Source of the DNA: Octopus bimaculoides
Taxonomy: Eukaryota
Direction: 5' to 3'
Assembly (NCBI RefSeq): GCF_001194135.2
Contig: NC_068989.1
Location: forward strand, 81,712,845 to 81,776,844
DNA length: 64,000 nucleotides
A program made the position numbers and the translations under genes. Position 1 is the first letter of the stretch; each line of letters begins with the position of its first letter. Under the pieces are notes generated by a model that was not told the DNA's origin, made no database searches, and was given only the letters and a program-made list of their open reading frames with translations. Below are positions 12,751-61,179 of this stretch, piece by piece.

Positions 12751-13267
12751 GTGACTGTGCAGAAGCTTCTCCATTAGTTTTGTCTGTTAGTTGAGATCAA
12801 AATATCAGAGGCTTTTTATATAAGAGCATCCCTATTCTGATGATGTTCTCATTGGTGATTGTGATGATATTGACAGTGATGGTGGTGGTGTTGTTGACAG
12901 TAGAAGGGTGGTGTAGGCAGTGGTGATGGCAGTGGTGTTGACAATTGTGGTAGTGGTAGTCAAAGAGTTAGTCAGCAGTGGTAAGTTAAACTTTCAAATA
13001 CCCAACAATGAATACTTTCATTATACTTCTCCATAACTGCCACCTTGTTGTACCATTTCACTTCCAGAAGCATCTCAACCACAATGCCAACCATTAAGCC
13101 TTGGAATATCACTCCTTCAACAACAAATGTAGCTGGTGGTAGTGGTGGTGGTGGTGGTTGTTGGGGGTACTGATACTACTGGTGGGGATGGTGATGGTGA
13201 AGGCGGTACCAGCATTTGGAAATACCAGGATACCTAATATCTTCCTATCTTTTTTAATGAAGGAATA

Positions 13268-33435: not shown

Positions 33436-34533
33436 TGATATCTGGGTGACCAAGTTAGTAGTGGGGGTGGGTGCACTAAAAGTGTAGCTGCTAGAATAAG
33501 AATAGCCTGGGCAAAGTTTAGAGAGCTCTTACCCCTGCTGGCGACAAAGGGACTCTCACTCAGAGTAAAAGGCAGACTGTATGACGCATGCATACGAACA
33601 ACCATGCTACATGGCAGTGAAACATGGGCTGTAACTGCTGAGGACATACGTAAGCTCGCAAGGAATGAAGCCAGTATGCTCCGTTGGATGTGTAATGTCA
33701 ATGTGAATACCCGTCAGAGTGTAAGTATCTTGAGAGAAAAGCTGAACNNNNNNNNNNNNNNNNNNNNNNNNNNNNNNNNNNNNNNNNNNNNNNNNNNNNN
33801 NNNNNNNNNNNNNNNNNNNNNNNNNNNNNNNNNNNNNNNNNNNNNNNNNNNNNNNNNNNNNNNNNNNNNNNNNNNNNNNNNNNNNNNNNNNNNNNNNNNN
33901 NNNNNNNNNNNNNNNNNNNNNNNNNNNNNNNNNNNNNNNNNNNNNNNNNNNNNNNNNNNNNNNNNNNNNNNNNNNNNNNNNNNNNNNNNNNNNNNNNNNN
34001 NNNNNNNNNNNNNNNNNNNNNNNNNNNNNNNNNNNNNNNNNNNNNNNNNNNNNNNNNNNNNNNNNNNNNNNNNNNNNNNNNNNNNNNNNNNNNNNNNNNN
34101 NNNNNNNNNNNNNNNNNNNNNNNNNNNNNNNNNNNNNNNNNNNNNNNNNNNNNNNNNNNNNNNNNNNNNNNNNNNNNNNNNNNNNNNNNNNNNNNNNNNN
34201 NNNNNNNNNNNNNNNNNNNNNNNNNNNNNNNNNNNNNNNNNNNNNNNNNNNNNNNNNNNNNNNNNNNNNNNNNNNNNNNNNNNNNNNNNNNNNNNCATAA
34301 AAGACACCATTTCGAGCCTGGCCGTTTTCGTGCGGGTGACACGTAAAAGCACCCACTACACTCTCTGAGTGGTTGGCGTTAGGAAGGGCATCCAGCTGTA
34401 GAAACTCTGCCAAATCAGACTGGAGCCTGGTGTTGCCATCCGGTTTCACCAGTCCTCAGTCAAATCGTCCAACCCATGCTAGCATGGAAAGCGGACGTTA
34501 AACGATGATGATGATGATGATGATGATGATGAT
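33436..34533 (+). mobile_element. 5'-truncated RTE LINE: ORF2 C-terminus, gap, 3' UTR, (GAT)n tail
   Basis: RIAWAKFRELLPLL...LHGSETWAVT...RNEASMLRWMC. Links the dispersed 3' UTR repeat to an RT-coding element. Confidence 0.9.
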
Positions 34534-37039: not shown

Positions 37040-37345
37040 CTCATCATCATCATCATCGTCGTTTAACGTCCGCTTTCCATGCTAGCCTGGGTTGGATGAT
37101 TTGACTGAGGACTGGTGGACCAGGTGGCCACACCAGGCTCCAATCTGATTTGGCAGAGTTTCTACAGCTGGATGCCCTTCCAAACGCCAACCACTCCAAG
37201 AGTGTAGTGGGTGCTTTTACGTGCCACCGGCACGAAGGCCAGTCAGGCAGTACTGGCAACGGCCATGCTCGAAATGGTGTATTTTACGTGCCACCTGCAC
37301 AGGAGCCAGTCCATCAGCACTGGCAACGAATTCGCTCAAATGTCT
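37040..37345 (-). mobile_element. RTE 3' UTR copy
   Basis: (cat)n cgtcgtttaacgtccgctttcc...ggagccagtcc..gcactggcaacga. Confidence 0.8.
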
Positions 37346-40340: not shown

Positions 40341-40475
40341 ATCAATATAGTTGACGAGGAGAATGCAAGTGGAGACAAAGTGAAGAATGGACCGAAGAAA
40401 ATCCCCATTGGTTGGAGAAAAGACTTTGACAGTCACGGCGAGATGGTTTTCTTACATTCCAGCTCCAACCATAAA
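40341..40475 (+). CDS. ARHGAP12: ARHGAP12/27-like exon B (first half of tandem WW region), phase 0-0
   Basis: ttttatttcAG|ATCAAT...CATAAA|GTATAT; 135 nt; INIVDEENASGDKVKNGPKKIPIGWRKDFDSHGEMVFLHSSSNHK, similar to ARHGAP12 PRGWSEELDERGHTLYTSDYTNEK (recalled). Confidence 0.85.
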
Positions 40476-40573
40476 GTATATAAAACCTTACACTATAATT
40501 TTCTGTACTTTTTCAATCTTCAATGCCAATGCCTTATTTTACTTATTTTTTTCATGTTTTCTCTCTTTTTAAA

Positions 40574-40640
<67 letters not shown>

Positions 40641-40719
40641 ATTTTCNNNNNNNNNNNNNNNNNNNNNNNNNNNNNNNNNNNNNNNNNNNNNNNNNNNNNN
40701 NNNNNNNNNNNNNNNNNNN

Positions 40720-40778
<59 letters not shown>

Positions 40779-41046
40779 ATTTTCTTTCACTTTTCTGCAT
40801 TCTCTACTCTCTGCCTGCTTGTCTGTCTGTCTGTCTATCTCTTTCTCTCTCTATCTCAGTTTCTATGCATCCTTCATCTGCTCTCTTTTTCATACATTCA
40901 CCTTTACCATTTCACATTCTCTATCTGTCACCCTTTTAACTATTTGATTTCCCCCCATTTTCCTTTCCCTCCTTTCTATTTCTCTTCTTTCTTCTCCTTC
41001 CTTCCTGATTGTCCCTCTCTTTAATCTCTCTCTTTTCCCCTTACAG

Positions 41047-41127
41047 TGGAAGCAGTCTATAGATCAGACTGGCAGACCTTATTACTACAGGGAAGGTTCT
41101 ACAGAATCTGTATGGGATCTTCCAGTG
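41047..41127 (+). CDS. ARHGAP12: ARHGAP12/27-like exon C (WW domain), phase 0-0
   Basis: ttttccccttacAG|TGGAAG...CCAGTG|GTAAGT; 81 nt; WKQSIDQTGRPYYYREGSTESVWDLPV, similar to WLKHVDDQGRQYYYSADGSRSEWELPK (recalled). Not in the ORF track. Confidence 0.9.
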
Positions 41128-41535
41128 GTAAGTACCACATCCCACTGTTGTTCCCTCTGCCAAGGGTTCTGCTGGTGATAATATGATGTTGACACCACAT
41201 TCATTATCATATTGCTGGTCTTTCTGGGGTCTACTTTTTTTTTTGTTATTGGATTCTTGTGTGTGTGTGTGAATTGTTTTGTTTAGTAGTGGAGGAATAT
41301 CTCTTGCATAATTATGTGTCTTCTTTTTGTCTCTTTAGATATATATTTGTACATACATATGTATATTTGTGTGTACATATATAGACAGGCACATACTAGA
41401 ATATGTGTTTGTGTATGTATGTGTATATGTATGTANNNNNNNNNNNNNNNNNNNNNNNNNNNNNNNNNNNNNNNNNNNNNNNNNNNNNNNNNNNNNNNNN
41501 NNNNNNNNNNNNNNNNNNNNNNNNNNNNNNNNNNN

Positions 41536-41570
41536 AGGGGTAAGAGCTCTCTAAACTTTGCCCAGGCTAT
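41536..41570 (-). mobile_element. RTE ORF2 fragment at the edge of the 100-N gap
   Basis: Reverse complement atagcctgggcaaagtttagagagctcttacccct is identical to about 33502-33536. Confidence 0.75.
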
Positions 41571-41649
41571 ATACATACATATATATATATACATGATTTG
41601 ATTTTTGATACAATCTAGTTACAGCTTGTGAGCTGTGGCCATGCTGGGA

Positions 41650-42755
41650 CATCACCATTTGGTGTTGCTACATAATTTTACCTCACTAATTCTTTTTAGA
41701 AATTGACATCTGGTGCATGAGGGAGTTTGATTCCACTGCCCTCATCTGCCATCCTGGTGTCAAGTTGGTTCATTGGAACACTTGACAGTAACAGGTACAG
41801 TTTCATTTTGAAGACACCTACATCCACCATATGCAGGTCTCTCAGGTCCTTTGGGAGGATATTGAAGAGCTGTGGTACCCTGAAACCCAGGCTGTTGCAG
41901 TATCTTGTCCTAATTTGTAGTCCTTGATACTATGCAGTGGCACCCTGTTCTAGTATTTGTGTAACTCTCGATGCTAAAGTTTGGGACAAGTCCTTCCTGG
42001 ATCTTCCAGATGTATATTATGGCATATCTTTCTCGCCTAGGCTCTATGGAATAGAGACTTAATCTTTCGAGTTTTTACCAGTAACTTATATGCTGCATAG
42101 AAGCTATCTTCTTCATGTAGTAGCTTCATTGGATTGCCTCAAGTTCTGCAATTAATTTGACACTGGTTGGTGACTATAGCTGAGAGCAATAGTCAAAGTG
42201 GCTTAGTCCAAGTGTCTTCCAGAGGACTATCATGGTTTCCTGATCTCTTGTTCTAAAAGTTCTAAGACTCCATCTGGTCTGCCGCCTGCATTTCATTGCC
42301 AACTTAGCAACATGCACATGGAAGGATGCATCATTACTCATGTAGATGCCCAGGTCTCACACTGACTGTGTCTCTGGGATTGCAATCCCTCCAGGTCCAG
42401 TGTATTCAATTGGTATTGCATTTAGTTTTGCATGCTGATAACACAAGGCTTGAAACTTTTCAGCATTAAACTGCATGCTATTCTTTTCAGCCCACTTGTA
42501 TATTCCATTCAGCTCACATTGCAGGTGCATAGTGTCTTGAGGGTTCTGTATCACCTGTGAGACTGCATAACTTGTGATCATGGCTCTGTGTGTGGTTGAG
42601 GGCATATCTGAGAGGGCCATTATGAACAGTAGTGGTCCCAAAACAGTGCCTTGCGGAACACTGCTCACTATTTGTGTGTCATTGAATGTGGCCCCATTGG
42701 CTACTACCACCTGACTGCTATCCTTCAGAAAGTCATGCAGCCATTCTCCCCCACA
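41650..42755 (-). mobile_element. CR1/L2/Crack-like LINE, RT and C-terminal part
   Basis: VPQGTVLGPLLFIM..., WAEKNSMQFNAEKFQAL; further 3' an NSLGFR.PQLFNILPKDLR-like segment. Confidence 0.85.
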
Positions 42756-43993
42756 CACACTTTGTATATAAAGGGAGGTGAGATGTACTGATGAAAATGA
42801 AATGAGAAGGGAGAGTGTAGACTGAATGAGAGGTTAAAATTAGGAGAGAAAGAGACAGCGAGAGAGAAGTGAGAATAGATAAAGGAAACATTAAGTAGCA
42901 TCCAAAACTTTGGTATCAACTTAATTTGCTAAAATTCTTCTTCTCACAGACTATTAATAGTAAGGAAAAGATTTGGGGGCAAAAGATGATGACAACAATC
43001 ATGACAACAACAATGATGATACCAAATGTGGTTTGAAATAATTTACGTTATAATTTGTAAGTTTTTTTGCCTTGTTTGCTTTGTGTGAAGAAGCAATGTC
43101 CATGACCTTCGAAAGCTCTCTAAGATTGGTGAGTTTGATGCCATTAATGATTTATTAAAAACAGCTACAGGTCCACATCTGGAGAAAAGAAATGAGTTGA
43201 GAAAAAGCTCCACATGGCTTATGTCCTAAGGAGACAGGACTGGGAAATAATGGTTAGTGTGAGACTGAGAAAGTTGGATGTACCAAGAGTGATGAGAAAT
43301 GGAAAGGTGAGTAGGCTCAGAGAATCTGAGTAGTGGATGTGTTACATCCGTCAGCTCTGAGGAACAGAGGCCATTACAGTAATAAGAGACAGTGAGAGGA
43401 GAGAGCACACCTGTGGACCAGAAACTGTAGTGTGTCTGTTAGTGATTTTATGTCAATCAGTCAAGTAGCTCTTCTTTGGACATAGTCCAAGACGCCTGTG
43501 TGCATAGAAGCTTCCCTGTCTCAGATGTTGGGGGCAGTACTCCTATGTGGGTTCCTTATAAGCCTTATAGTGTGTTGTCATCCTAAATCTCTTCCTTATT
43601 ATTTGTAGTCAGTGAAAGGAAAAAACTTGGGGGTTGAAATATTTTTTTTGGCTCTGACGAGAAGAGCCATTCTTGGATGTGGTCCAAGCTATGCTAAGGA
43701 TATGACTAGTGAGGCCCAGATTTAGAATGACTGTGAGGATTCTAGCTGAGCACTGCTCATGTTTAGTGGGATGCAGTGAGTTGTGCCTCATTCATATGAA
43801 TAGTGCTTCAGGGTTTGTTTTTTTCTTATTGTTAGGTTGGCATAACCAACTTTGTTGAACATTTTAACAACAACCAGAATCTCATGTCAGTCATAAATTA
43901 CAATCGTAGGACCAGACTTCATTCTATAAGTTTTACAGAAAGTTCAGATGCATGAATAAAGAACCTAAACAATAGAATATCAAAAGAATTTAC

Positions 43994-44092
43994 CATTTCA
44001 GAAATAATCAAATTGATGTAGACCAACCATTCTTGAATTTTCGTGTTATCATCTGCTTGTAATAAAATTTGGTTGTTCTGTATATCTTCCAG
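43994..44092 (-). CDS. ARHGAP12: Exon G, PH domain C-terminal helix, phase 0-0, in the inverted block
   Basis: Minus strand: atgcttacAG|CTGGAA...GAAATG|GTAAAT; 99 nt; LEDIQNNQILLQADDNTKIQEWLVYINLIISEM, carrying the conserved PH-helix tryptophan. Confidence 0.88.
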
Positions 44093-44869
44093 CTGTAAGC
44101 ATATAATTTGATGAATTATTAAAGCAATTAAGGTACTTGATAATATACAGAATAGTGCTGGTAGACATAACTATCCACATATCGTTACAGCACTATCATT
44201 TTGCTATACAGCACTAACACATTAGTATATAGTACTATCACATTAGTAATGTATATTTATGATCTTATTAATATCTTTTAGACAAGAATATCAAATTATT
44301 TGCGTATAAAGTACTCTTTTGGTATCCTGGAATCAGATTTTTCCATATGACTTAGGGTTAAGGCCAGGAAAATGTTAGTCATCTGCAAATGCACGGTTTT
44401 CTTATTGTGAACCCATTCTGTCTTACAAGTTCAATTATATTTTTGCAAGATAAGAAAGTTAATTTGCGGAAAGAGGATCATTTCTTTATGTAGATTCACA
44501 GCATATGCTCAAAGCATGTAGAGAGCAGACAAAAGGTTAAATCTGTTGAAAGAAACTGGTCATAAATTATCACTTTTATTTAGAAACATTTGAATGTTTT
44601 CCATTCCTTTTACTCATGGTTTGTTCAGTATCTGGTTGTTGTTATAGGTTATTTCAGGGGTAGCCATATTTACTATCACTTCAACTTCTATTGTATGTTC
44701 AACATATAAAAAAAAAATGCCAGCTATACAGTTGTATCAGATTTAGTAGTGGAAACTGATAGAGACTTGGATGGTGGTCAAAGCAACTATCATATTCTGT
44801 AAGATACATGAAAGTGACTTTTATGAACCATCTGTTTGAGGTAAAGAAACAATGCTGACAAAAACTTAC

Positions 44870-45053
44870 AAGGAGAACATTCTTCTTGCTTGAGATATCT
44901 TTTGAAGCATGAGAACACTTGGCTCCACCAAGGAATATAATTTGTTCTGGATTTCCATTTTTGGCACCAGGTCCGACTGCAGCAGCACGTTGATCTTTGT
45001 AAAATGCAATATTGGAACCAAATATCTTCACATATGTTTGACTCCACTTTTTC
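44870..45053 (-). CDS. ARHGAP12: Exon F, PH domain core, phase 2-0, in the inverted block
   Basis: Minus strand: ctctctacAG|GAAAAAG...CTCCTT|GTAAGT; 184 nt; KKWSQTYVKIFGSNIAFYKDQRAAAVGPGAKNGNPEQIIFLGGAKCSHASKDISSKKNVLL. The SKDxSSKKNV motif is typical of the ARHGAP9/12/15/27 PH domain. Confidence 0.92.
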
Positions 45054-45213
45054 CTGTAGAGAGATTAGTGGAAAAAATACTGACATTCTAACTCGTGTTA
45101 GCATGGAAAGCAATGTAAAACAATGAAAAACTGGCATCAAGTATTCCAAAGCTGAATACCAGTACGAAAACACAACACTACATTTGCTACCCATAGTAGC
45201 AAATCAATTCATC

Positions 45214-45610
45214 GAGTGGCTGTGTGGTAAGTAGCTTGCTTACCAACCACATGGTTCTGGGTTCAGTCCCACTGCGTGGCACCTTGGGCAAGTGTCTTCT
45301 ACTATGGCCTCGGGCCGACCAAAGCCTTGTGAGTGGATTTGGTAGACGGAAACTGAAAGAAGCTCGTTGTGTATATGTATATATATATATGTATGTGTGT
45401 GTATATGTTTGTGTGTCTGTGTTTGTCCCCCCAACATCGCTTGACAACCGATGCTGGTGTGTTTATGTCCCCATAACTCAGCAGTTCGGCAAAAGAGACC
45501 GATAGAATAAGTACTAGGCTTCCAAAGAATAAGTCCTGGGGTCGATTTGCTCGACTAAAGGCGGTGCTCCAGCATGGCCGCAGTCAAATGACTGAAACAA
45601 GTAAAAGAGT
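45214..45610 (+). mobile_element. Full-length, young SINE family 1 (tRNA-derived, CORE-like; possibly octopus OR2-type)
   Basis: gagtggctgtgtggtaag (A box)...gggttcagtccc (B box)...caccttgggcaagtgtctt (CORE-like)...internal microsatellite...gaaacaagtaaaagagt. Confidence 0.85.
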
Positions 45611-45639
45611 AGAAAGAGTATTAGTTTACAACAAAACAG

Positions 45640-46010
45640 CAATAGGCGTCAAGCACTTGCAGCCAACAGTGCTCTCTCTGAAGAAATATAACTTCTAAGT
45701 AGAGTCCATCAAGGAACTGTATAGGGACCACTGCTGTTTGTGGTGGCTTTCTCAGACATGCTTTCAGTCATACAGTCAGCTACTATTACAGTTATGCTGA
45801 CAATACAAAAGTAAGACTAGCAGAGGAAAACCCTCATGATAATACAAAATTACAGCAAGACCTAAACACAATATAGAAGTGAGCTGAAAAAAAAAAAAAA
45901 AAAGGCAGTTCAATGCTGAGAAATTCAAAGTACACTACTATCAGCCCACAAATAGATTGCAATCAGAATACATACGACCAGTGGATATTGCAATCCCAGA
46001 GTTACAATCA
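45640..46010 (+). mobile_element. Degraded LINE RT fragment
   Basis: ...SYADNTK...LQQDL..I.K.AE..QFNAEKF, same family as 41650-42755. Confidence 0.6.
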
Positions 46011-46154
46011 CAGCTATCGTTCTCTTTTGCCGAACCACTAAGTTACAGGGACGTAAACACACCAGCATCGGTTGTCAAGTGATGTTGGGGGGGACATAGA
46101 CACACAAACATACATATACACACACATACATACAGGAAATAGTGCAATACTAAC

Positions 46155-46210
46155 CCAACTTTTTTCCCATTTTCCATAATTTTTGTTTTGTTTAAGATTC
46201 CCGTCTTGTT
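46155..46210 (-). CDS. ARHGAP12: Exon E, PH domain N-terminus, phase 0-2, in the inverted block
   Basis: Minus strand: gaatttctttgcAG|AACAAG...GTTGG|GTTAGT; 56 nt; NKTGILNKTKIMENGKKV(G), similar to EKYGLLNVTKIAENGKKVR (recalled). Confidence 0.9.
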
Positions 46211-47547
46211 CTGCAAAGAAATTCAAAAAATCTTTTAAGAAACAAAAGGAGCAAAAAAGAAAAAAGATTGTGTAATCAAGACTTCAGAACAGTTATAGAA
46301 ATTGAGCTGTTAATCTCAAGTAGGGAGACAATATTAGAAAACTTAGGTTTTGATCTCAGACATGTAAAGAGTGAAACCATCTTATATGACTTTACAACAT
46401 TAATATACATTTAATATATATCAATATACATCAATATAAATTGAGTTGTTTCTTTATTACTTTCAGTTTTTTGAATAGCAACCATGCTCAGATACTTCCT
46501 TCAAAGGTTTTATAGCTGATTACCCTGATACTAGTACTTTATCTGGGACTTATTTTATCAAGCTCCATTTGTCAAATGGTAAAGTTCTCCTTGTAATAAA
46601 AGTATGTAACTTGCATAGAATTCTACAAGGTAGTTCTGTTTGATGCACAAATTCATCAGCAATCCATTATCGATATAAACATGTGCATAAACAAATATAT
46701 GTATGAATAAACAACATATATACAATATACATGCACACACATATATATATCATTAAATCCTGTGAAATCATCCAACATGAGCTAGACAATTTCAGAGGGT
46801 CTGATGAGTTGGAGGACTTCATGGACCTTTGATGACTGCTTTGCCAAGGCATCTACAGTTGGATAACCTTTATAATGTCAGCCACTTCTCAGAATGTATT
46901 AGGTGCTTTTTTCTCTTTATATCAAGGCTCCAGCACTGGTGGGGTTGCCAAGTAATTTGCAAGACAAAAAAACATCCCTTGATTGAGTGAAATGAAGTAA
47001 AGAGGAAGATGACTTTATGCCAGGTGTTGTTGTAGTGCAGATATATGGCTACTCGGCACTATATAAGGTGGCTAGGAGGAGACGGGGTGATAAAGATGGT
47101 GGTAACAAGTGTCAGCATGTACTCTCTATGCACAAGAGGATAAGTAAAGAGAGGAGCACAGAAGATCGGGAAGGATGGATGGGTAAGTCAGCCAGAGTGT
47201 GAGAGGAGATGACAGATAGTTAGAGATGGTGGTAGAGATGAATGTAGTGAACGGTGAATACAGAGTGGAGGCATTGTTGATGGTAAATAAGGATTCAGGA
47301 GAAGATGATAAGAAAAACAGGCAGCTCAGGAAGGTGGAGGTGATGAGTTGCAGAACAAAAAGCAAACAGAGCAACAGAATAACAAACTGTAGATAGATGA
47401 GAAATAAGGAGGTTATGTGTAGGGCGAGTAAAGAAGTAATGGTGGTGGGTAAACAGATGTACAGTGACAGGGATAGAGACCAGTGGTAAATAGGAGTGGA
47501 TATAGTGAGTGGCAAATAAAGGTGGGGTGGGAAATCAATAATAAATA

Positions 47548-47957
47548 TGGCGATCTTTCAATACCAGTACCAAATATCGGCCTTTTCCGTAAAAAGTGTC
47601 TTCAGCGATCTTTACCAAAGATCGGCCTTTTTCATAAAAAGTGTTGGAGGGAAAGAGGGAAATGGGTTAGGGTTTTAGGGTTAGGGTTAGTGTTTAGGGT
47701 TAGGGTTACAGTTAGGGTTACGATTACGGTTAGGGACGGAATTCCCTAACCCAAACCCTAACCCTAAAACCCTAACCGTAACCGTAACCCTAAACCCTTC
47801 AAACCCTAACCCTAAAACCCTAACCGTAACCCTAAACCCTTCAAAAGAAATTGCGCTCTCTGTATCTCTTTTGCTTTTACGACGTCGTTTCCCTCTTTCC
47901 CTCCAACACTTTTTACAGAAAAGGCCAATCTTTGGTACTGGTATCGAAAGATCGCCG
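47548..47957. mobile_element. Fold-back MITE with inward-facing telomere-like (TTAGGG)n/(CCCTAA)n repeats
   Basis: TIR ggcgatctttcaataccagtaccaaa.. / ..tttggtactggtatcgaaagatcgcc; TA at 47546-47 and 47958-59; centre ggttaggga-cggaat-tccctaacc. Confidence 0.85.
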
Positions 47958-48585
47958 TAGATATTGGATGGGGCTAATAATGATATATGGAAGTAATAAG
48001 ACGTAGCTCAGGACAAGATAACTGTCGGCTCAATGAAAAACAAACAGGCAAGAGATGATGTCGTGTATGAGGGATGAATCTCAAAAGGAAGTGGTAGCAG
48101 AAAAAGGAGACGAAATATGTAGTCCTGCTCTCATGTAATTACAGAAGCTGGATGGTGCAATAATTAGAAAAACGATGGCAAGATGGGTGACGGAAAAATG
48201 AGTCATTTTAATACTACACCATTACCCCAACTTCCATATGTATTTTATCTTGTTTAATTACTGCAACGTTATTATAATGTAGATAGTATACCATATTTCA
48301 TTACTGTAACTACTATACCATATCTAATTTCTCTAACCGAATCCAACTAATTCTAATTCATTATATGAACCTATGAAGGAGTATCTATATAGTTGATCAG
48401 GTTAGCAAAACTAGCAGCTAAATCTCCCTCACATCATAGCTCATTACCTTGAAAAGGGAGACATTGAATGATGTGACCTCAAACATATCTGCTAAAAAAC
48501 CAAAATGATCATGACTTGAATGTATTTAATAGACGGCTCCGTATACTCAGGATTGACCTGGGGCACAACAACAACAACAACTCAC

Positions 48586-48636
48586 CTTACAAATATCAAA
48601 TGCTGTTCCCATTAATGGCTGCACTTTCTCAGGACT
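48586..48636 (-). CDS. ARHGAP12: Candidate exon D (51 nt, WW-PH linker), phase 0-0, in the inverted block
   Basis: Minus strand: T-rich tract ttattttAG|AGTCCT...TGTAAG|GTGAGT (perfect donor). Only phase 0 is open: SPEKVQPLMGTAFDICK. No homology recognised. Confidence 0.6.
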
Positions 48637-49426
48637 CTAAAATAATTTTTTAAAAAAACAGAAAAAAAGAACAAATTCAGAAATGTAATTCTCTACAAAT
48701 GATGCCAGATCTTAGTAGATCAGGTATCAAATGTTTGGTAATCTTATATTTGGAAATATAACATTCTGTTTTTGAAATGGCTTAGTTAGTTAATGAGTGA
48801 GTGAGCAAGTGAGTAAGAGCGAGAGAGCGAGCAAGAACAAGAGCAAGAGAGAGAGAGAGAGAGTGGATTAGGTGAAGGGGGTTAAACTGGGTGACAGATT
48901 AAATCTACCGTTCTTAAATTATTATATCATTAAAATTTTGTGAATATGATGAAGCTAGACTGAATGATCTAAGTTTCTCTAGGTTGTTGTCTCACACTTT
49001 AGAGTTTAAGGAATTAAGGGGCGATTTTTAGAATTCTACGGACCCATTCTGATTAATATTTACAAACCAATTCTTTATGATTTTTACATGTTCAGACAAT
49101 TGTGCATGTGTACATGTGCGTGTGTCTACTTTACTAGAACTAAAACAGAAGAGAAAGACTTTTTCAGTCAAGCTAATACTGCACCTTAGATTGCCACTTA
49201 ACTTTATGTACCCTCACTCTCATACCATACATTAACACGTGGTTTTAAGAGGTGCAACCCAAAGGACTTTAGAGGGGAAACATCAGTCCATTTGTAAATT
49301 CTGAATAACTATTTACAACATCACCAAGCTTAATGCGTGTGTATATACATGTATATATATTATATATATAGTTCAAATTTACAGAAAATAAATGATGAAG
49401 ACAAGTGATGGAACAACAAACAGGTG

Positions 49427-49523
<97 letters not shown>

Positions 49524-49559
49524 AACACAAAGTGTGTGTGTGTGAGAGAGAAAGAGGAC

Positions 49560-50300
49560 CTTGCAAGATTCTTTAAGTTAATAAGTAGCATTCATGAATC
49601 AACCCAATTCAATATGGTAATGAATGAATGAAAGGGAATCCTTTTCTGGACATTCTAATAAAGAAAATGAGACAGTTGTAACCAACTTCTACTGCAAGAA
49701 CACAGATACACACCAATACTTAGATTTTAAATCTTACCACCCTTCCCACAAGAAAAGAAACATATCATTCAACTTGGCAAGCTGTTTATGCTGAATAGTT
49801 ACAGACACAAATAGATGAGGTAAATGACTGGTAGAACTAAATATGTTCCCTCATAAACAGAAATATCCCAAAATGCTAATAAATTATGCCATAACCAAGG
49901 CAAAAGAAATCCTGATCTCTGCCTTATCGAGAAACACTCTCACTGAGGGTGAATACCAGAAAAAGATATGTTTTGTCGTGGAAATCAGTGGCCCACTGGA
50001 CACCATGTGGTTAAAAATATACAAGAGGGAAAGGACAACTATGGGCTATTGATAAAGAATTTGCAAATCCAGAAGCCAAGACACACTTTCAGTTTCATAC
50101 CTATTATCAATGGAGTAACAGGGTACATACCAACCTGTCTGGGGAAAAATATAGCTGAACTTGGGTTCTGAGGGGCAAAATGCAAATCCTTAATTTATAC
50201 ACTATAAATGATCACACTATCTGGGACTATAAAAATCTGTGAGACCTTAAAATTTAAAGGATGATAAACAAAATGGGGCTTTTCTTCACAACCTTGCTAC
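49560..50300 (+). mobile_element. Decayed Penelope-like element (RT C-terminal region)
   Basis: LISSIHESTQFNM...ILFLDILIKK, then equivalents of YL.F.S.HP..K..I..NLA.R.C.IV and YPKMLINYAITKAKEI; many stops. Confidence 0.7.
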
Positions 50301-51219
50301 CAAGCAGGTGGCCAATCAAAATTTCTTCCAAATCAAAAGGAGAAAGAGGACAGACAGACATACAGACATACATACATACATTTGTAGTAAAGAAACATGG
50401 CACTATACACTAGTGGCAGTAGGTGGGTAATTTTTTGGTTTGAATATTTCAAGAATCTCTCACAGTGCCAGTAGCTCAGACGACAAAATTTGAATCTTAT
50501 TGTCCACACTGTCAAAAGTACTACAATATCATTAGATTTACAACAACTTAGTATTAAATTGGAAACCATGCCAGCATGGAAAGCGGACATTAAACGATGA
50601 TGACGATGATGATTTATAAGTTATAAATTAAGGAGTGGTTTTACAAAATATGCCATATGTCAGCTGGAATATCACTGAATGTAATATATACAAGGTGAAG
50701 CACTAGATAATTTGACATAAGTGAGTATTACAGAATAAAATGCATATCATGTGTAACACAGAATGTTGTTTATGTGACATAATGTTGCACACAATATGGA
50801 CCATAGATGTCATGTAATATGGTGTATAGACAGGAGAGGACACAGTATAATGTATGTAACTTGTAACAAGATGGCCGGGAGCAGAATATGATATGAGGTG
50901 ACACAGAATATTATATATATTTAGGTGCACTGCATACTGCAACTCATATGACAGGAATTCCATATATTGTATAATCTAGCTGGGGTGTCATATACCATGA
51001 TATAGTAGCTTGGCATTCTCAAATATATTAAAAAGTCCTGGACTAAGTAAGTAGATTTATTCAATATTGTGAATCATTATGGAACTGGTTTCATACACTA
51101 CACAAATTGATAACTATATTGATTTGTAACTTGACGAATAGGAGTCTCACAACAGCTCGTCCATAAAACATTCAATTTACACCAGAAAATACAGAATATT
51201 AGCTGAAATTTTCACTCAG

Positions 51220-51385
51220 TTCATCATCATTGTTTAACGTCCATTTCCCATGTTGGCATGGGTTGGATGGTTTGACAGGAGCTGTCCAAACTTCAATTGT
51301 CTTGTTTTGGCATGGTTTCAATGGTCGGACGCCCTTCCTAACACCAACCACTTTCCAGAGTGTGCTGGATGCTTTTTATGTGCCA
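51220..51385 (-). mobile_element. Degenerate RTE 3' UTR fragment
   Basis: catcatcattgtttaacgtccatttccc...gcccttcctaacacc...ttttatgtgccacc. Confidence 0.65.
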
Positions 51386-52676
51386 CCTGCACATTGCAAT
51401 AACTTGATTTTGATTCTTACCAACAACAGATAAAAAAATAATTTACAGAAATATAGTAGATAAACACCATGGAATATAGAAAACACTTAAAATCAATAAT
51501 GTCCCTTGTAAAAACATGAATACTACAAACTTCCATTAGCCATTCAATATAAGGTTAATGATTCAATAAAACATTGCAACAAATGCTAAGATCAATCCCA
51601 CTGGTAAGTTGTCACAGCTAGTAATACAAGAAACAGTATTGATAAACAGTTATTGCCTGAGAGTACAATTTCAAGATATTTGGTAAACTAATGAAATAAT
51701 GCTGTTTTGATCAAATACAAAGGAAGGTAGAAACAGCCACTAAAGAATTCTGAAATCAAGAAATATCTAATACAAAATAAAGAAATCAACTTTAAAAAAT
51801 AAAAGATATTTATGTTGAACAAAAAGAAAAAGTAAAACTGAATCAATTAGAATATTGAAAATGCAAGTAAGAGAAAATTATTGGCGTTAAGTGAAAATAG
51901 GAAAGATGGCAGAGCAATATATGTTCAGGTATGTTGACAGAAAGAACTTGTTGTTCAAGTGAAGAGTGGGAAAGGAAGGAAATACAGAGAAGTCTTTTAA
52001 TTCAATCAATTTGATTAAAAGATGAAAAACACCACCAAAAAAAAAAAAAAAAAAAAAAAAAACAGAATTTGGAAAAATAATGTAAATATAGAAAAATAAA
52101 TTGAAGTCAAGACTGATTTCTTTATAAGCAAAAGACTGGATTATAAGAGAGGGTATGCATAACATTGCAGTGGTATTCCATGACTTTCCAAATGCGATTT
52201 GCAATCTGACTAAAATAAAACTATTTCAACTGAGAATTGGAACCAGATGAAAGATACATGTCATAGCACAAATAGTCTGAAACTGTTTGTTCTGGTGATC
52301 CTGTTGTCTGCTAGAAGATGGTAGGGGTTCGCGCTCCAGCATGCAATATATACCGGGTACGGATTGCATCAATAAGCAGCTGGAGGAGGCTCTTTCTGAT
52401 GCTAAAAATGGTACTAAAGTCAAACAGCCATATTGATGTGGTGATAAACATTACTTCTCAGTATAGTTACTACTTTCATTTCTTATAGAAATTTTCTAAC
52501 TAGCTATTTTGCTTGTTTATATATATATTTAATGTCCATTATCCATGCTGGCATGGGTTGGACAAAATATATATGTATATACATACATACATATACTATA
52601 AACATATATGTAATCCTGTGTAAACACACACACATACGTGTGTGTGCGTATAAAACAGGCAAAAATAACGGGTTAC

Positions 52677-53075
52677 TCTTTACTCTTTTACTTGTTTCAG
52701 TCATTTGACTGCAGCCATGCTGGAGCACCGCCTTTAGTCGAGCAAATCGACCCCAGGACTCATTCTTTGGAAGCCTAGTACTTATTCTATCGGTGTCTTT
52801 TGCCAAACCGCTAAGTTATGGGGACGTAAACACACTACCATCCGTTATCAAGCAATGTTGGGAGGACAAACACAGACACACAAGCATATACACAAACATA
52901 CATATACATATATATGACGGGCTTCTTTCAGTTTCCGTCTACCAAATCCACTCACAAGGTTTTGGTTGGCCCAAGGCTATAGTAGAAGACACTTGCCCAA
53001 GGTGCCATGCAGTGGGAATGAACCCGGAATCATGTGGCTGGTAAGCAAGCTACTTACCACACAGCCACCCATGCA
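52677..53075 (-). mobile_element. Full-length SINE family 1
   Basis: ttactcttttacttgtttcagtcatttgactgcagcc...gctacttaccacacagccac. Confidence 0.85.
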
Positions 53076-57875: not shown

Positions 57876-57924
57876 CACACACACACATACACATTTTGAG
57901 TTCTATTTTCCTGTTTGTATCATT

Positions 57925-57979
<55 letters not shown>

Positions 57980-60900
57980 CAAACATAGATACATACATAT
58001 CCACATACATATAAATATGTGTGCTTGTGTGTGTGTTTTGATTATTCACATAATACAGACCAATAAAAGCCAGAATGATTTCCACGATATAACTCTTTAA
58101 TTGATTTAATCCTTGATTAGCCTGGTTGCTTGTACAGACACTTATTTATCATTGGGTATCCATATCATACCAATGTTTATGAAGACAGTTTGTGTAAATA
58201 TTTCATTTGAAGGTGACTGATTAAAACATGGAGAGGTGACAGGGCTAAGTGGATAAGACGTTGGGGCAATCAACATATAATGTTTTCATATCAAATGACT
58301 GTATTTTATGTTGTAGGACACTTCAGTTTCCCCCATGGTGTACTGCTCCCTCAGCTGGAACAGTACTGCCACACGCACATAAATATCTTAGACTGAACTC
58401 AAAAAAATACTATTCATCTTATTATCAAATACTCACCAACACTACAACCCTTGGTTCACAGACATACGTCGTCGTCGTTGTGACAGTATGTCTCTGAATC
58501 AGGGGTTCTCTTTTCCATAGTCATTCTACCACTACTATAATAGCCTCTGCTCTTCCAAATTAGCTAGTTAATACTCATAACCTCTACAACTAGTACCCCA
58601 TGTCTCTCTTTTTCTTATCCTCCCCCCCACTACCATTTTCTTCTTCATCCTCACCTCATCTTGCAATAACTACTTTCATCTATTCCTTCTCTATAGTGTC
58701 ACCATTTATTCCCTCCCCACCCAAGTCTTTCCTGCAAATATCAACTTACAGATGCTCCAACTAAACTTTAACCCCATCAATCTCACCAATTTTATTGGTT
58801 CATGCCATCAGTATCGCTTCTTGTGTCCAAGTCATTAAAAATACCAGAATGTTTAGACATTATAATCCACCACCTACTGATGCATATATTCAGAGATGGC
58901 AAGAGCTTGAGCTTTACAAAACTACTATTGTAATTAAATATTTGTCTGTGTTTTTATTTAAGACTTGTTATACAAAGATCAAAGATCTGTAACAGATGTT
59001 GAAGTTCCAGGATTGCAATCCTGGATGTGTTGAAGTTACATTTAATATAATAAACGATTCTTAAATATTTATCAGATTTATTAAATTATTATATATTCAA
59101 AGACCAAATCAAGAAACTAACTGAAGAAGTGAATTGTTGTCTTGTCTTTCTCAAGAACTTTGCAACGATAAAGAGAAATAAAATGTTATACAAACCTCGA
59201 CGTAAGAAGGCATTTGAGATGGTAAAGTTTTAGATCTTTGTGGTGGTACACTCACAGGAATGGGTTGGTGTTGTAAGGTCATAGATTTGGCCATAGTGAC
59301 AGGAGGAATTTCATTATCGAGGGTAACACTTTCTGAATACTGAAATAAGAAATTTTGTGGGTTTTGTTCATCCTATCATTTGGAATCTAACACAATGTAT
59401 ATTGTGAATTTTCAGAAAAAAAAAAGGGGCTGCAAGCTTATGACGCTGACTTTCGAGTCATGGGTTAAAACTTTGTTACAGCCATAATGTTGTACTCTTA
59501 GCAAACTATCAGACACGATGGGATATCTATCATTATTAGACACTTAAACACTGACAAATGTGGTGAAGTTTCAAACTGCAGGTTTAACATTGTTGTTAGA
59601 TCCAATTTTCTTTATACTGTAGTCAACATATCTATTCTGTGCAATATGCAGTGTAAAAATGGCATATGTCTTTTGTAAAGCATGTTATACATGGGAGGAT
59701 ATCTCTGCAATAGTAACAATGTAACTGCATTAAAATACCATACTTGTTACAGATAATATTGCTCTTGTAACCAGTGCATATGAAAAATTAACATTCAAAC
59801 AGACAGAGAATGTGATGTATCCCAAAGAAGTGGAAGTTAGCTAAGGGTAAACATACTAAAGAAGAGACATAAATGAAGTGAAGTATAGAGACAAGCAGAA
59901 ATGAGAATAAGCTCAAAAAATAAGATCACAGTGATTTATAGAAAGAGGATTCAGAGGTTGAGGTCAAGCTGGAAAAAATAAGTAATGTTAAAAAAACCTT
60001 ACTTTGAAATGTTCAGTTTATAAACTGAACAAACCATATTGTAATCACTGAATTATACAAGATTATTTAAATTATTTGACCCTTAAAACTTAACACTAAT
60101 TTACTAAACACTATCTGTGGCTACTAATAAGTTAGTGTAGTATCCTATTGCCCAGGATACTATCATAAAAATGTATGTTTTTAGTGAGTTTTTTTTGGCT
60201 CCATTTTAGTTTGTATTGGTGAGTAAAATTTAGTAAATCAAGACATTGTCATGAGAGTGGAATAAGCTAGACATCCTTCTTCCTGAAGATGAACTACACA
60301 ATAAAATATAAAATTAATAATTGTTGTCAGCCATGTATGACTAGAATCAGAATTTTGTACTCTGACCAGGGACACAGCATAACAACTGAAACAAAGATTA
60401 AACTCATAGCTATGCCATAAATCGCTCAAATTTGTGATCCCACATCTCATGTTAATTACATTATTTGTGTTCAGAAATACCCAGAAACAATTTCCAGACA
60501 ATCATATTTCCAATAAATAAATGTGATAGGAAGACAGGTTTTAAGTAAAAAAGTATTTTCAATATCACACTAGGACAAAAATTTCCTCTTAAGATTTTGT
60601 GAGAAAAGTTTAGAGATGTTGTGATGTGACACAATGAAAATGTCATTATTATTTCTGGGACATAATAGTTACTAGTGATAAATTAGTCAAACATGCATAT
60701 ATTCATACGCACACACACACACACCATTTTTTAATAAGAATAGTACTGACAGTAACTTTGAAGTTTTGACCAGTTAAGTCATTATTGGAGTCACTGACAA
60801 TACTATTCTTGTTGATAAATAATAAATTTGTACTCTACCCAAAAGTATTGAGTGATCATTCAGTTCAATGTCAAATTGTTTTTATTATAATGTAAAAACA

Positions 60901-61179
60901 AACATCAATACACACATGCATATATATATATATATATATATNNNNNNNNNNNNNNNNNNNNNNNNNNNNNNNNNNNNNNNNNNNNNNNNNNNNNNNNNNN
61001 NNNNNNNNNNNNNNNNNNNNNNNNNNNNNNNNNNNNNNNNNAGAGAGAGAGAGAGAGAGAAAGAGAGAGATTGTTTGATAGATAGATAGATAGATAGATA
61101 AATGTCGTGTGTGTGTATACATCCTGTCACCTTAATTATAGAGAAACCATTGAGTCATGTTTGTTATTTTTCTATTCAG

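Follow-up and report, generated by a model that had tools for sequence, protein, structure and literature searches.

The 19,406-bp block between positions 41536 and 60941 of the window, by which we mean the whole 64,000-nt stretch of the Octopus bimaculoides genome that was analysed, is very probably a scaffold that stands in the wrong orientation in the assembly, in the middle of a single RhoGAP gene. All five coding exons of this gene inside the block lie on the minus strand, and the exons on either side of it lie on the plus strand. A mis-oriented contig was the reading preferred in an earlier note on this DNA, and it is supported by the mRNA junctions, the HiRise joins, the size of the block and the split annotation of the gene. 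Exons, junctions, assembly construction and annotation were all observed directly, and from them we infer the true orientation of the DNA. The finding is almost certainly an ordinary assembly error and reveals no new biology or mechanism. The features are listed in Table 1.

The window comes from O. bimaculoides assembly GCA_001194135.2 (record CM046609.1), which was made by HiRise and Juicebox scaffolding of the published shotgun assembly, without gap closing (PMC9068888 supplement). There are 13 runs of N in the window, and the only two that are exactly 100 N long are those at the edges of the block. The PH exons do lie on the minus strand between these two gaps, as had been claimed. Apart from these and an internal gap of 156 N, the runs range from 10 to 645 N. 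Dovetail/HiRise writes 100 N for every join and leaves the gap unsized (PMC5545040); the suggestion that these gaps are placeholders for unsized scaffold joins is borne out by this convention and by the use of HiRise in building the assembly (PMC9068888). Both block edges are scaffolder joins, and the 100-N convention suggests that in the 2015 assembly the block stood as a scaffold of its own. Look-ups of the original scaffold ends, using the contigs that encode the 2015 gene models P0001 and P0003, returned no record.

Orientation errors made by Hi-C scaffolders affect mainly short contigs of tens of kb and are known to harm gene prediction (PMC7672694). At 19.4 kb, the block is inside the range where Hi-C orientation is unreliable (range from PMC7672694). 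The locus resembles the orientation errors produced by HiRise and 3D-DNA in that a short block between unsized 100-N joins is in the right place, is reverse-complemented and breaks a gene model. There is nothing unusual about the case; the error was detected through transcripts and protein collinearity, with neither a contact map nor a reference genome.

Table 1. Features of the window, with the evidence on which each is placed
Feature	Position	Strand	Evidence
Predicted WW-domain exon, upstream part	1269-1481	+	Pfam WW 31.9 bits (cut-off 26.9); splice sites read from sequence
Coding exon, 135 nt, phase 0-0	40341-40475	+	3' end (..CCAACCATAAA, 40446-40475) from RNA; acceptor 40341 inferred from sequence
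Cassette exon, 81 nt, weak WW, last plus exon ahead of block	41047-41127	+	Covered exactly by RNA contigs
100-N unsized scaffold join, left block edge	41436-41535		Gap length and HiRise convention (PMC5545040)
19,406-bp block, most likely a wrongly oriented original 2015 scaffold	41536-60941		CM046609.1:81,754,380-81,773,785
Last exon inside block, 99 nt, joined to 61180(+)	43994-44092	-	RNA, 8 runs
PH-domain exon, 184 nt, phase 2-0	44870-45053	-	Splice sites, RNA; 44870 to 44092 splice in 4 runs
PH-domain exon, 56 nt, phase 0-2	46155-46210	-	Splice sites, RNA
Exon just upstream of PH domain, 51 nt	48586-48636	-	Splice sites, RNA
Decayed Helitron-type PIF1 helicase remnant, inside 59196-48636 intron	55194-57196	+	Pfam
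Internal 156-N gap, not a breakpoint, content probably about 15 nt	55996-56151		DNA contigs, PIF1 collinearity, spliced intron
First exon inside block, 144 nt, phase 0-0	59196-59339	-	Splice sites ag/TAT...GAG/gt; RNA
100-N unsized scaffold join, right block edge	60942-61041		Gap length
Linker exon, 136 nt, phase 0-1, first plus exon past block	61180-61315	+	RNA: 43994(-) exon before, 63767 after
Exon with RPEL-like motif (LTGRPTMESLEAKGILK), just upstream of RhoGAP domain	63767-63889	+	RNA junction 61315 to 63767

The exons on the two strands were found to be joined in one continuous mRNA. RNA contigs were mapped on short exon-centred stretches, and the strand switches were traced through the loose ends of the contigs, whose sequence strings all mapped uniquely to the predicted places (nine of nine). 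The mRNA runs from 41127(+) to 59339(-), through the block to 43994(-), and from there to 61180(+). Inside the block the splicing order is 59196, 48636, 46210, 45053 and 44092, and after the block 61315 is joined to 63767. The junction out of the block, from 43994(-) to 61180(+), which the earlier note had predicted, was present in each of the eight RNA runs examined, which come from five studies, and the junction into the block, to 59339(-), in three of the eight. A single RNA contig of 2,905 nt reaches 1,332 nt upstream of 61179. This far exceeds the 534 nt that the five minus exons make up together, so the contig must go back into the plus exons before the block and thus span all three parts of the gene.

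Four of the minus exons (48586-48636, 46155-46210, 44870-45053 and 43994-44092) had been described with intact splice sites and frames, and these stood: each has AG/GT sites, and together they make 130 codons free of stops. They are real exons and not chance open reading frames, since in every run examined they were covered exactly and spliced by RNA contigs. The set was incomplete, as a fifth exon, seen in RNA at 59196-59339, past the 156-N gap, had been overlooked. This exon joins 41127(+) or 40475(+) upstream and 48636(-) downstream, and it is the actual partner of 41127(+), in place of the 48636(-) or 46210(-) that had been proposed. With the fifth exon included, flipping the block still gives a phase-perfect chain (0-0, 0-0, 0-0, 0-0, 0-2, 2-0, 0-0, 0-1, 1-1), and in the stitched open reading frame all phases match without a stop.

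Upstream of the block, the 3' end of exon 40341-40475 is spliced in RNA contigs either to 41047 or directly to 59339(-), and accordingly exon 41047-41127 is absent from a second isoform. Contigs that include this exon continue with TATTCAGAAAGTG..., the minus-strand sequence of 59339-59310. Its Pfam WW score of 17.5 bits is under the cut-off of 26.9. The predicted boundaries of exon 1269-1481, further upstream, are read from the sequence, and a tblastx match to L002, a transcript of another species, covers 1281-1478.

An mRNA of this kind would also result if the DNA were as assembled and the message were trans-spliced from three pre-mRNAs (plus, minus, plus) by two events, in the manner of mod(mdg4). 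The chimeric mRNA does exist and is abundant, and trans-splicing would give the same product. In mod(mdg4) and lola, where trans-splicing is known, common 5' exons are linked to alternative 3' modules by a single event. The octopus locus is like these genes in that, as the assembly is written, the exons of one mRNA occupy both strands. However, each molecule would here need two precise events at internal, constitutive, domain-coding exons, and the strand switches fall exactly on unsized joins made by the scaffolder. A further difference from these genes is that there was no sign of independent transcription units: no minus-strand transcript with a 5' or 3' end of its own appeared in the RNA contigs, and the minus exons, present in every contig, are internal and flanked on both sides by plus exons. 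In the transcript L002, from a related species, the exons moreover come in this order within one molecule, as a plain cis-spliced gene predicts. We regard trans-splicing as extremely unlikely; the likeness to mod(mdg4) and lola is a product of the assembly and does not count as evidence of their mechanism.

Comparison with other proteins and transcripts points to the same arrangement as the mRNA junctions. The stitched protein matched Takifugu ARHGAP27 by BLASTP in one collinear alignment (E = 7e-91, 36% identity over 521 aa), and Pfam detected in it a PH domain with 37.8 bits (cut-off 25.1) and PH_9 with 29.7 bits. P0003 continues exon 61180 and has a Pfam RhoGAP match of 151.3 bits, most of the GAP exons being past the end of the window. 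L002, an independent transcript of 3,187 nt, carries these exons on a single strand and in an identical order, and when mapped to the window it reads plus, plus, minus, minus, minus, minus, plus. No sister-species Octopus proteins or loci were among the matches of the protein database search. The opposite orientation of the block is required by the mRNA junctions, by collinearity with ARHGAP27 and by the transcript of the other species.

As judged from its sequence, the gene is an ARHGAP12/27-like RhoGAP with the predicted architecture WW-PH-RhoGAP. It is like the ARHGAP12/ARHGAP27/ARHGAP9/ARHGAP15 subfamily (SH3/WW - PH - RPEL - RhoGAP) in having these domains in the family order. This family order had been given in the earlier note together with an RPEL motif; Pfam agrees for WW, PH and RhoGAP and lends no support to the RPEL label. 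No RPEL motif was detected in the octopus protein by Pfam, even at E <= 10. Exon 63767-63889 was nevertheless aligned with 'LMKRPTLQSVKEKGYI' of ARHGAP27, and LTGRPTMESLEAKGIL pairs with the corresponding stretch of ARHGAP27, at the RPEL position reported for ARHGAP12 (2019 work, as cited in bioRxiv 10.1101/2024.08.24.609485). As to the SH3 domain of the subfamily, one like that of L002 and P0007 may lie in the N-terminal part of the octopus gene, which was covered within the window only.

In the public annotation the gene appears as three models, 556, 170 and 313 aa long, the kind of split that had been expected from such an artefact. The 556-aa model ends at 41178 through read-through into the intron. 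The 170-aa model, XP_014787043.2, is on the minus strand, has its start at an ATG within exon 59196-59339 and ends in a tail of seven residues, MWTCSCF. The 313-aa model, XP_014782149.2, starts at 61102, within an intron. The flipped block probably led the gene predictors to break the gene up into these truncated models, which are padded with intron read-through or, for the PH model, with an extra terminal exon. NCBI calls the fragments 'ARHGAP15(-like)' because each fragment is without the domains of the others.

If the annotation is taken as it stands, the PH block would be a separate small gene on the minus strand encoding a 170-aa 'rho GTPase-activating protein 15-like'. Besides XP_014787043.2, an older model of 163 aa has this form. 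However, the RNA contigs continue only into plus exons at both ends of the block exons, and the MWTCSCF tail of a model that begins at an internal ATG was supported by none of the four RNA runs compared there. A separate gene has a negligible probability and was rejected on the RNA junctions into plus exons at both ends.

The internal gap of 156 N could have been a further breakpoint, and the earlier note had argued that it is not, on the grounds that a Helitron helicase is collinear across it. This was borne out. DNA contigs in four runs joined 55995 to 56152 with 15 letters between them, TACACGGGGACCAAT, with the caveat that the PIF1 element is multi-copy and a bridging contig may derive from a near-identical copy elsewhere. 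The pieces of the PIF1 helicase stand in profile order on the plus strand: profile positions 2-47 and 100-186 come before the gap, and the 2B domain follows it (55725-55988 scores 78.8 bits for Pfam PIF1, and 56939-57196 matches Pif1_2B_dom). The gap lies inside the intron between 59196 and 48636, and RNA contigs show this intron spliced out. Given the bridging DNA contigs, the PIF1 order and the spliced intron, the two sides of the gap are collinear.

At the two edges of the block, no short-read DNA contig crossed the left or the right 100-N gap, so that there is read-level support for neither orientation. On the left, DNA contigs stop at 41431; on the right, they end at about 60870-60878 and resume at about 61076, and microsatellites lie to either side. 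The repeats in which the unique DNA contigs break off are (TG/TA)n, (TA)n and (AG)n/(GATA)n, together with a LINE fragment of very high copy number (41536-41570), which encodes ..AWAKFRELLP on the minus strand and runs into the left gap. The only other copy of this fragment in the window, at 33502-33536, runs into a gap of 548 N.

Repeats of this kind are able to mediate rearrangement, and perhaps the sequenced individual carried a real inversion of 19.4 kb, polymorphic or on one haplotype, with the gene disrupted there and intact mRNA supplied by the second allele or by different animals. The orientation of the deposited assembly is consistent with this. However, the breakpoints would have to coincide exactly with the only two scaffolder joins, which were oriented by contact statistics and not by sequence. 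The intact mRNA, identified by the junction out of the block, was found in every run, those of 2015 included, and the data examined gave no positive evidence of an inversion junction. A real inversion is very improbable.

A scaffold orientation artefact is by far the most probable explanation of these observations. On this reading the block is a short-read scaffold of 2015 that Hi-C scaffolding (HiRise and Juicebox) placed correctly but reversed. In the DNA of the animal, all exons of the gene would most likely be on one strand, with normal transcription and cis-splicing. With the block flipped, the introns become ordinary: the one joining 41127 to 59339 is about 1.9 kb and the one joining 43994 to 61180 about 2.6 kb, each with a gap in addition. 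Re-annotation of the flipped sequence should then yield one model made up of the 556-aa piece, the 170-aa piece less its MWTCSCF tail and the 313-aa piece less its first 26 residues.

The value of the finding is practical, for curation, and its scientific interest is low. It provides a recipe by which further errors of this kind can be sought genome-wide in this Hi-C assembly of short-read scaffolds: short blocks between two 100-N joins, with exons that continue the flanking gene on the other strand. At this locus, the reference for O. bimaculoides lists what is one conserved signalling gene as three 'ARHGAP15-like' fragments that look unrelated. Orthology tables, domain counts, expression quantification and analyses of RNA editing or isoforms are distorted here by the split.

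RNA-seq contigs were placed on short exon-centred stretches, and the sequence running off each exon end was read. Past 43994 on the minus strand, the contigs go on as the reverse complement of 61180-61209 (runs X36, X34, X29 and X28), and in the other direction contigs on exon 61180-61315 carry the end of the exon at 43994 just before it and 63767 just after it (runs X25, X31, X38 and X37). This exit from the block between the two 100-N gaps was found in 8 runs from 5 studies. The entry was found in 3 runs: contigs leave exon 41047-41127 for 59339-59310 on the minus strand, and 59339 has 41126-41097 before it. Between entry and exit, splicing leads from 59196 to 48636 and on through 46210-46155, 45053-44870 and 44092-43994. 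All nine run-off strings map uniquely, at the predicted places. A 285-nt contig links 40475, 41047-41127, 59339-59196 and 48636, and another of 2,905 nt reaches 1,332 nt upstream of 61179; because the five minus-strand exons total only 534 nt, it must extend back into plus-strand exons. These junctions and multi-part contigs establish the single-gene model at the RNA level. The earlier note had foreseen the junction from 43994(-) to 61180(+) correctly, but 41127(+) joins 59339(-) and not 48636 or 46210. A second isoform joins 40475 to 59339(-), alongside the inclusion form, in X36 and X28 contigs; the 81-nt exon that it skips, 41047-41127 (+), carries a weak WW motif and is thus a cassette exon.

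Trans-splicing from both strands could produce such an mRNA, but internal, constitutive exons would have to be joined precisely in two separate events, and no independent transcript ends were seen in the RNA contigs; we regard it as extremely improbable. A mis-oriented scaffold, the main reading of the earlier note, explains all observations and is very probably correct, the true orientation of the DNA being deduced; it is supported by the RNA junctions, the HiRise build and the split annotation.

The four minus-strand exons named earlier have intact splice sites and, when joined, give an open frame of 130 residues containing a PH domain (Pfam, 37.8 bits; cut-off 25.1). These exons are real, but a fifth had been missed. 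It was revealed by P0001, an older partial protein model of 163 aa that matches the minus-strand exons at 100% identity. This exon lies beyond the 156-N gap, with only 1.6 kb left before the 100-N gap on the right, and therefore the minus-strand part of the gene covers nearly the entire block.

Exons, gene models and mobile elements (window coordinates)
Feature	Position	Strand	Remarks
Fifth exon	59196-59339	-	144 nt, phase 0-0, read back to acceptor
Four exons named earlier	48586-48636, 46155-46210, 44870-45053, 43994-44092	-	canonical AG/GT splice sites
Model, 556 aa	ends 41178	+	17 codons read into intron past 41127
PH model XP_014787043.2, 170 aa	59294-43155	-	'rho GTPase-activating protein 15-like', internal ATG start
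RhoGAP model XP_014782149.2, 313 aa	starts 61102	+	26 residues from intron
Reverse-transcriptase-like ORF fragments and PIF1/Helitron helicase remnant	42357-42758 (-), 54456-54910 (+), 55194-57196 (+)		
SINE-like unit, example copies	11119-11345, 12453-12761, 34327-34523, 37041-37326, 56543-56824		

As had been anticipated, the annotated gene is split, with three separate models at the locus. XP_014787043.2 adds a terminal exon (43155-43993, -) with a seven-residue tail, MWTCSCF. Contigs of four RNA runs over 43900-45100 gave no support for this tail, nor any continuation from 43994 other than to 61180(+). The RNA contigs contradict a separate small PH gene, as annotated. P0001 ends exactly at the exon edge 43994 and P0003, another older model, begins exactly at 61180, as one transcript split across scaffolds would produce.

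The stitched chain (40341-40475, 41047-41127, the five minus-strand exons, 61180-61315 and 63767-63889) keeps phase throughout with no stop, so that the phase-perfect chain proposed for the flipped block holds with the fifth exon included. Extended with P0003, which models the downstream part and contains a RhoGAP domain (151 bits), it gives one collinear match to Takifugu ARHGAP27 (E = 7e-91), which runs through WW, PH, linker and GAP in turn. Domain content and this alignment place the predicted protein in the ARHGAP12/27/9/15 group. The label 'RPEL' given earlier to a plus-strand segment finds partial support: the segment aligns with ARHGAP27, but has no Pfam RPEL match. In L002, a transcript contig of 3,187 nt that comes from a different species, homologues of these exons lie on one strand; mapped on the window they read +, +, -, -, -, -, +. 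At 1612/1613 of L002 the homologue of exon 1269-1481 directly abuts that of 41047-41127, with no counterpart of exon 40341-40475 (+) between them; this exon may be alternative or lineage-specific. At 61229 (+), in exon 61180-61315, the 2015 DNA run X1 has T where the assembly, X6 and X8 have A. The affected codon is CAA, in which T at position two would turn Gln into Leu; a polymorphism, either heterozygous or individual, is the likely cause.

Among the 13 N-runs in the window, exactly 100 N occur in only two, 41436-41535 and 60942-61041, which flank the 19,406-bp block as the earlier note had stated. The 156-N gap inside it (55996-56151) is not a breakpoint. In four runs, DNA contigs carry 15 letters (TACACGGGGACCAAT) between 55995 and 56152, although, with a multi-copy helicase element and two mismatches on the right side of the bridging contig, this contig may come from a near-identical copy elsewhere. 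PIF1-helicase fragments lie on the plus strand on both sides in profile order (positions 2-47 and 100-186 before the gap, the 2B domain after), and the RNA splice from 59196 to 48636 spans it. Together these make the two sides collinear. The gap size is probably a large over-estimate, although the surrounding Helitron/PIF1 remnant is multi-copy. Decayed mobile elements fill the introns within the block, and the SINE-like unit (~200-400 bp) has at least 8 copies across the window.

The assembly is Octopus bimaculoides GCA_001194135.2 (record CM046609.1, record position = window position + 81,712,844). It integrated new Hi-C data with the published shotgun assembly (PMC9068888), using HiRise scaffolding and Juicebox curation, with no shotgun improvement or gap closing tried (PMC9068888 supplement). 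At every join HiRise inserts 100 N, leaving the gap unsized (PMC5545040). On this basis the best reading of the block is a single small scaffold from 2015, set between two others. With their few contacts, short contigs typically fall victim to Hi-C orientation errors, which are known to harm gene prediction (PMC7672694). Microsatellites flank both 100-N gaps. No DNA contig crosses these gaps (unique short-read contigs end at 41431, ~60870-60878 and ~61076), and none of the short-read contigs at either gap shows the orientation as deposited, for which contact statistics are the sole basis. At its left end the block opens with 35 nt, 41536-41570 (-), that belong to a very high-copy LINE fragment with another copy at 33502-33536 (+), encoding ..AWAKFRELLP from the C-terminal region of the reverse transcriptase. 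Summed contig depth there is at least 10^5, versus ~15-50 in single-copy sequence. The original scaffold probably ended at that point on account of this repeat.

A real inversion of the block, polymorphic or confined to one haplotype, is very unlikely, given that both breakpoints would have to match the only two scaffolder joins and that the intact mRNA in every examined run would have to stem from other alleles. A mis-oriented scaffold would be a common, documented error requiring no special biology, of the same type as the standard local orientation errors of Hi-C scaffolds. It would hold no biological novelty, and the value of the finding is for curation.
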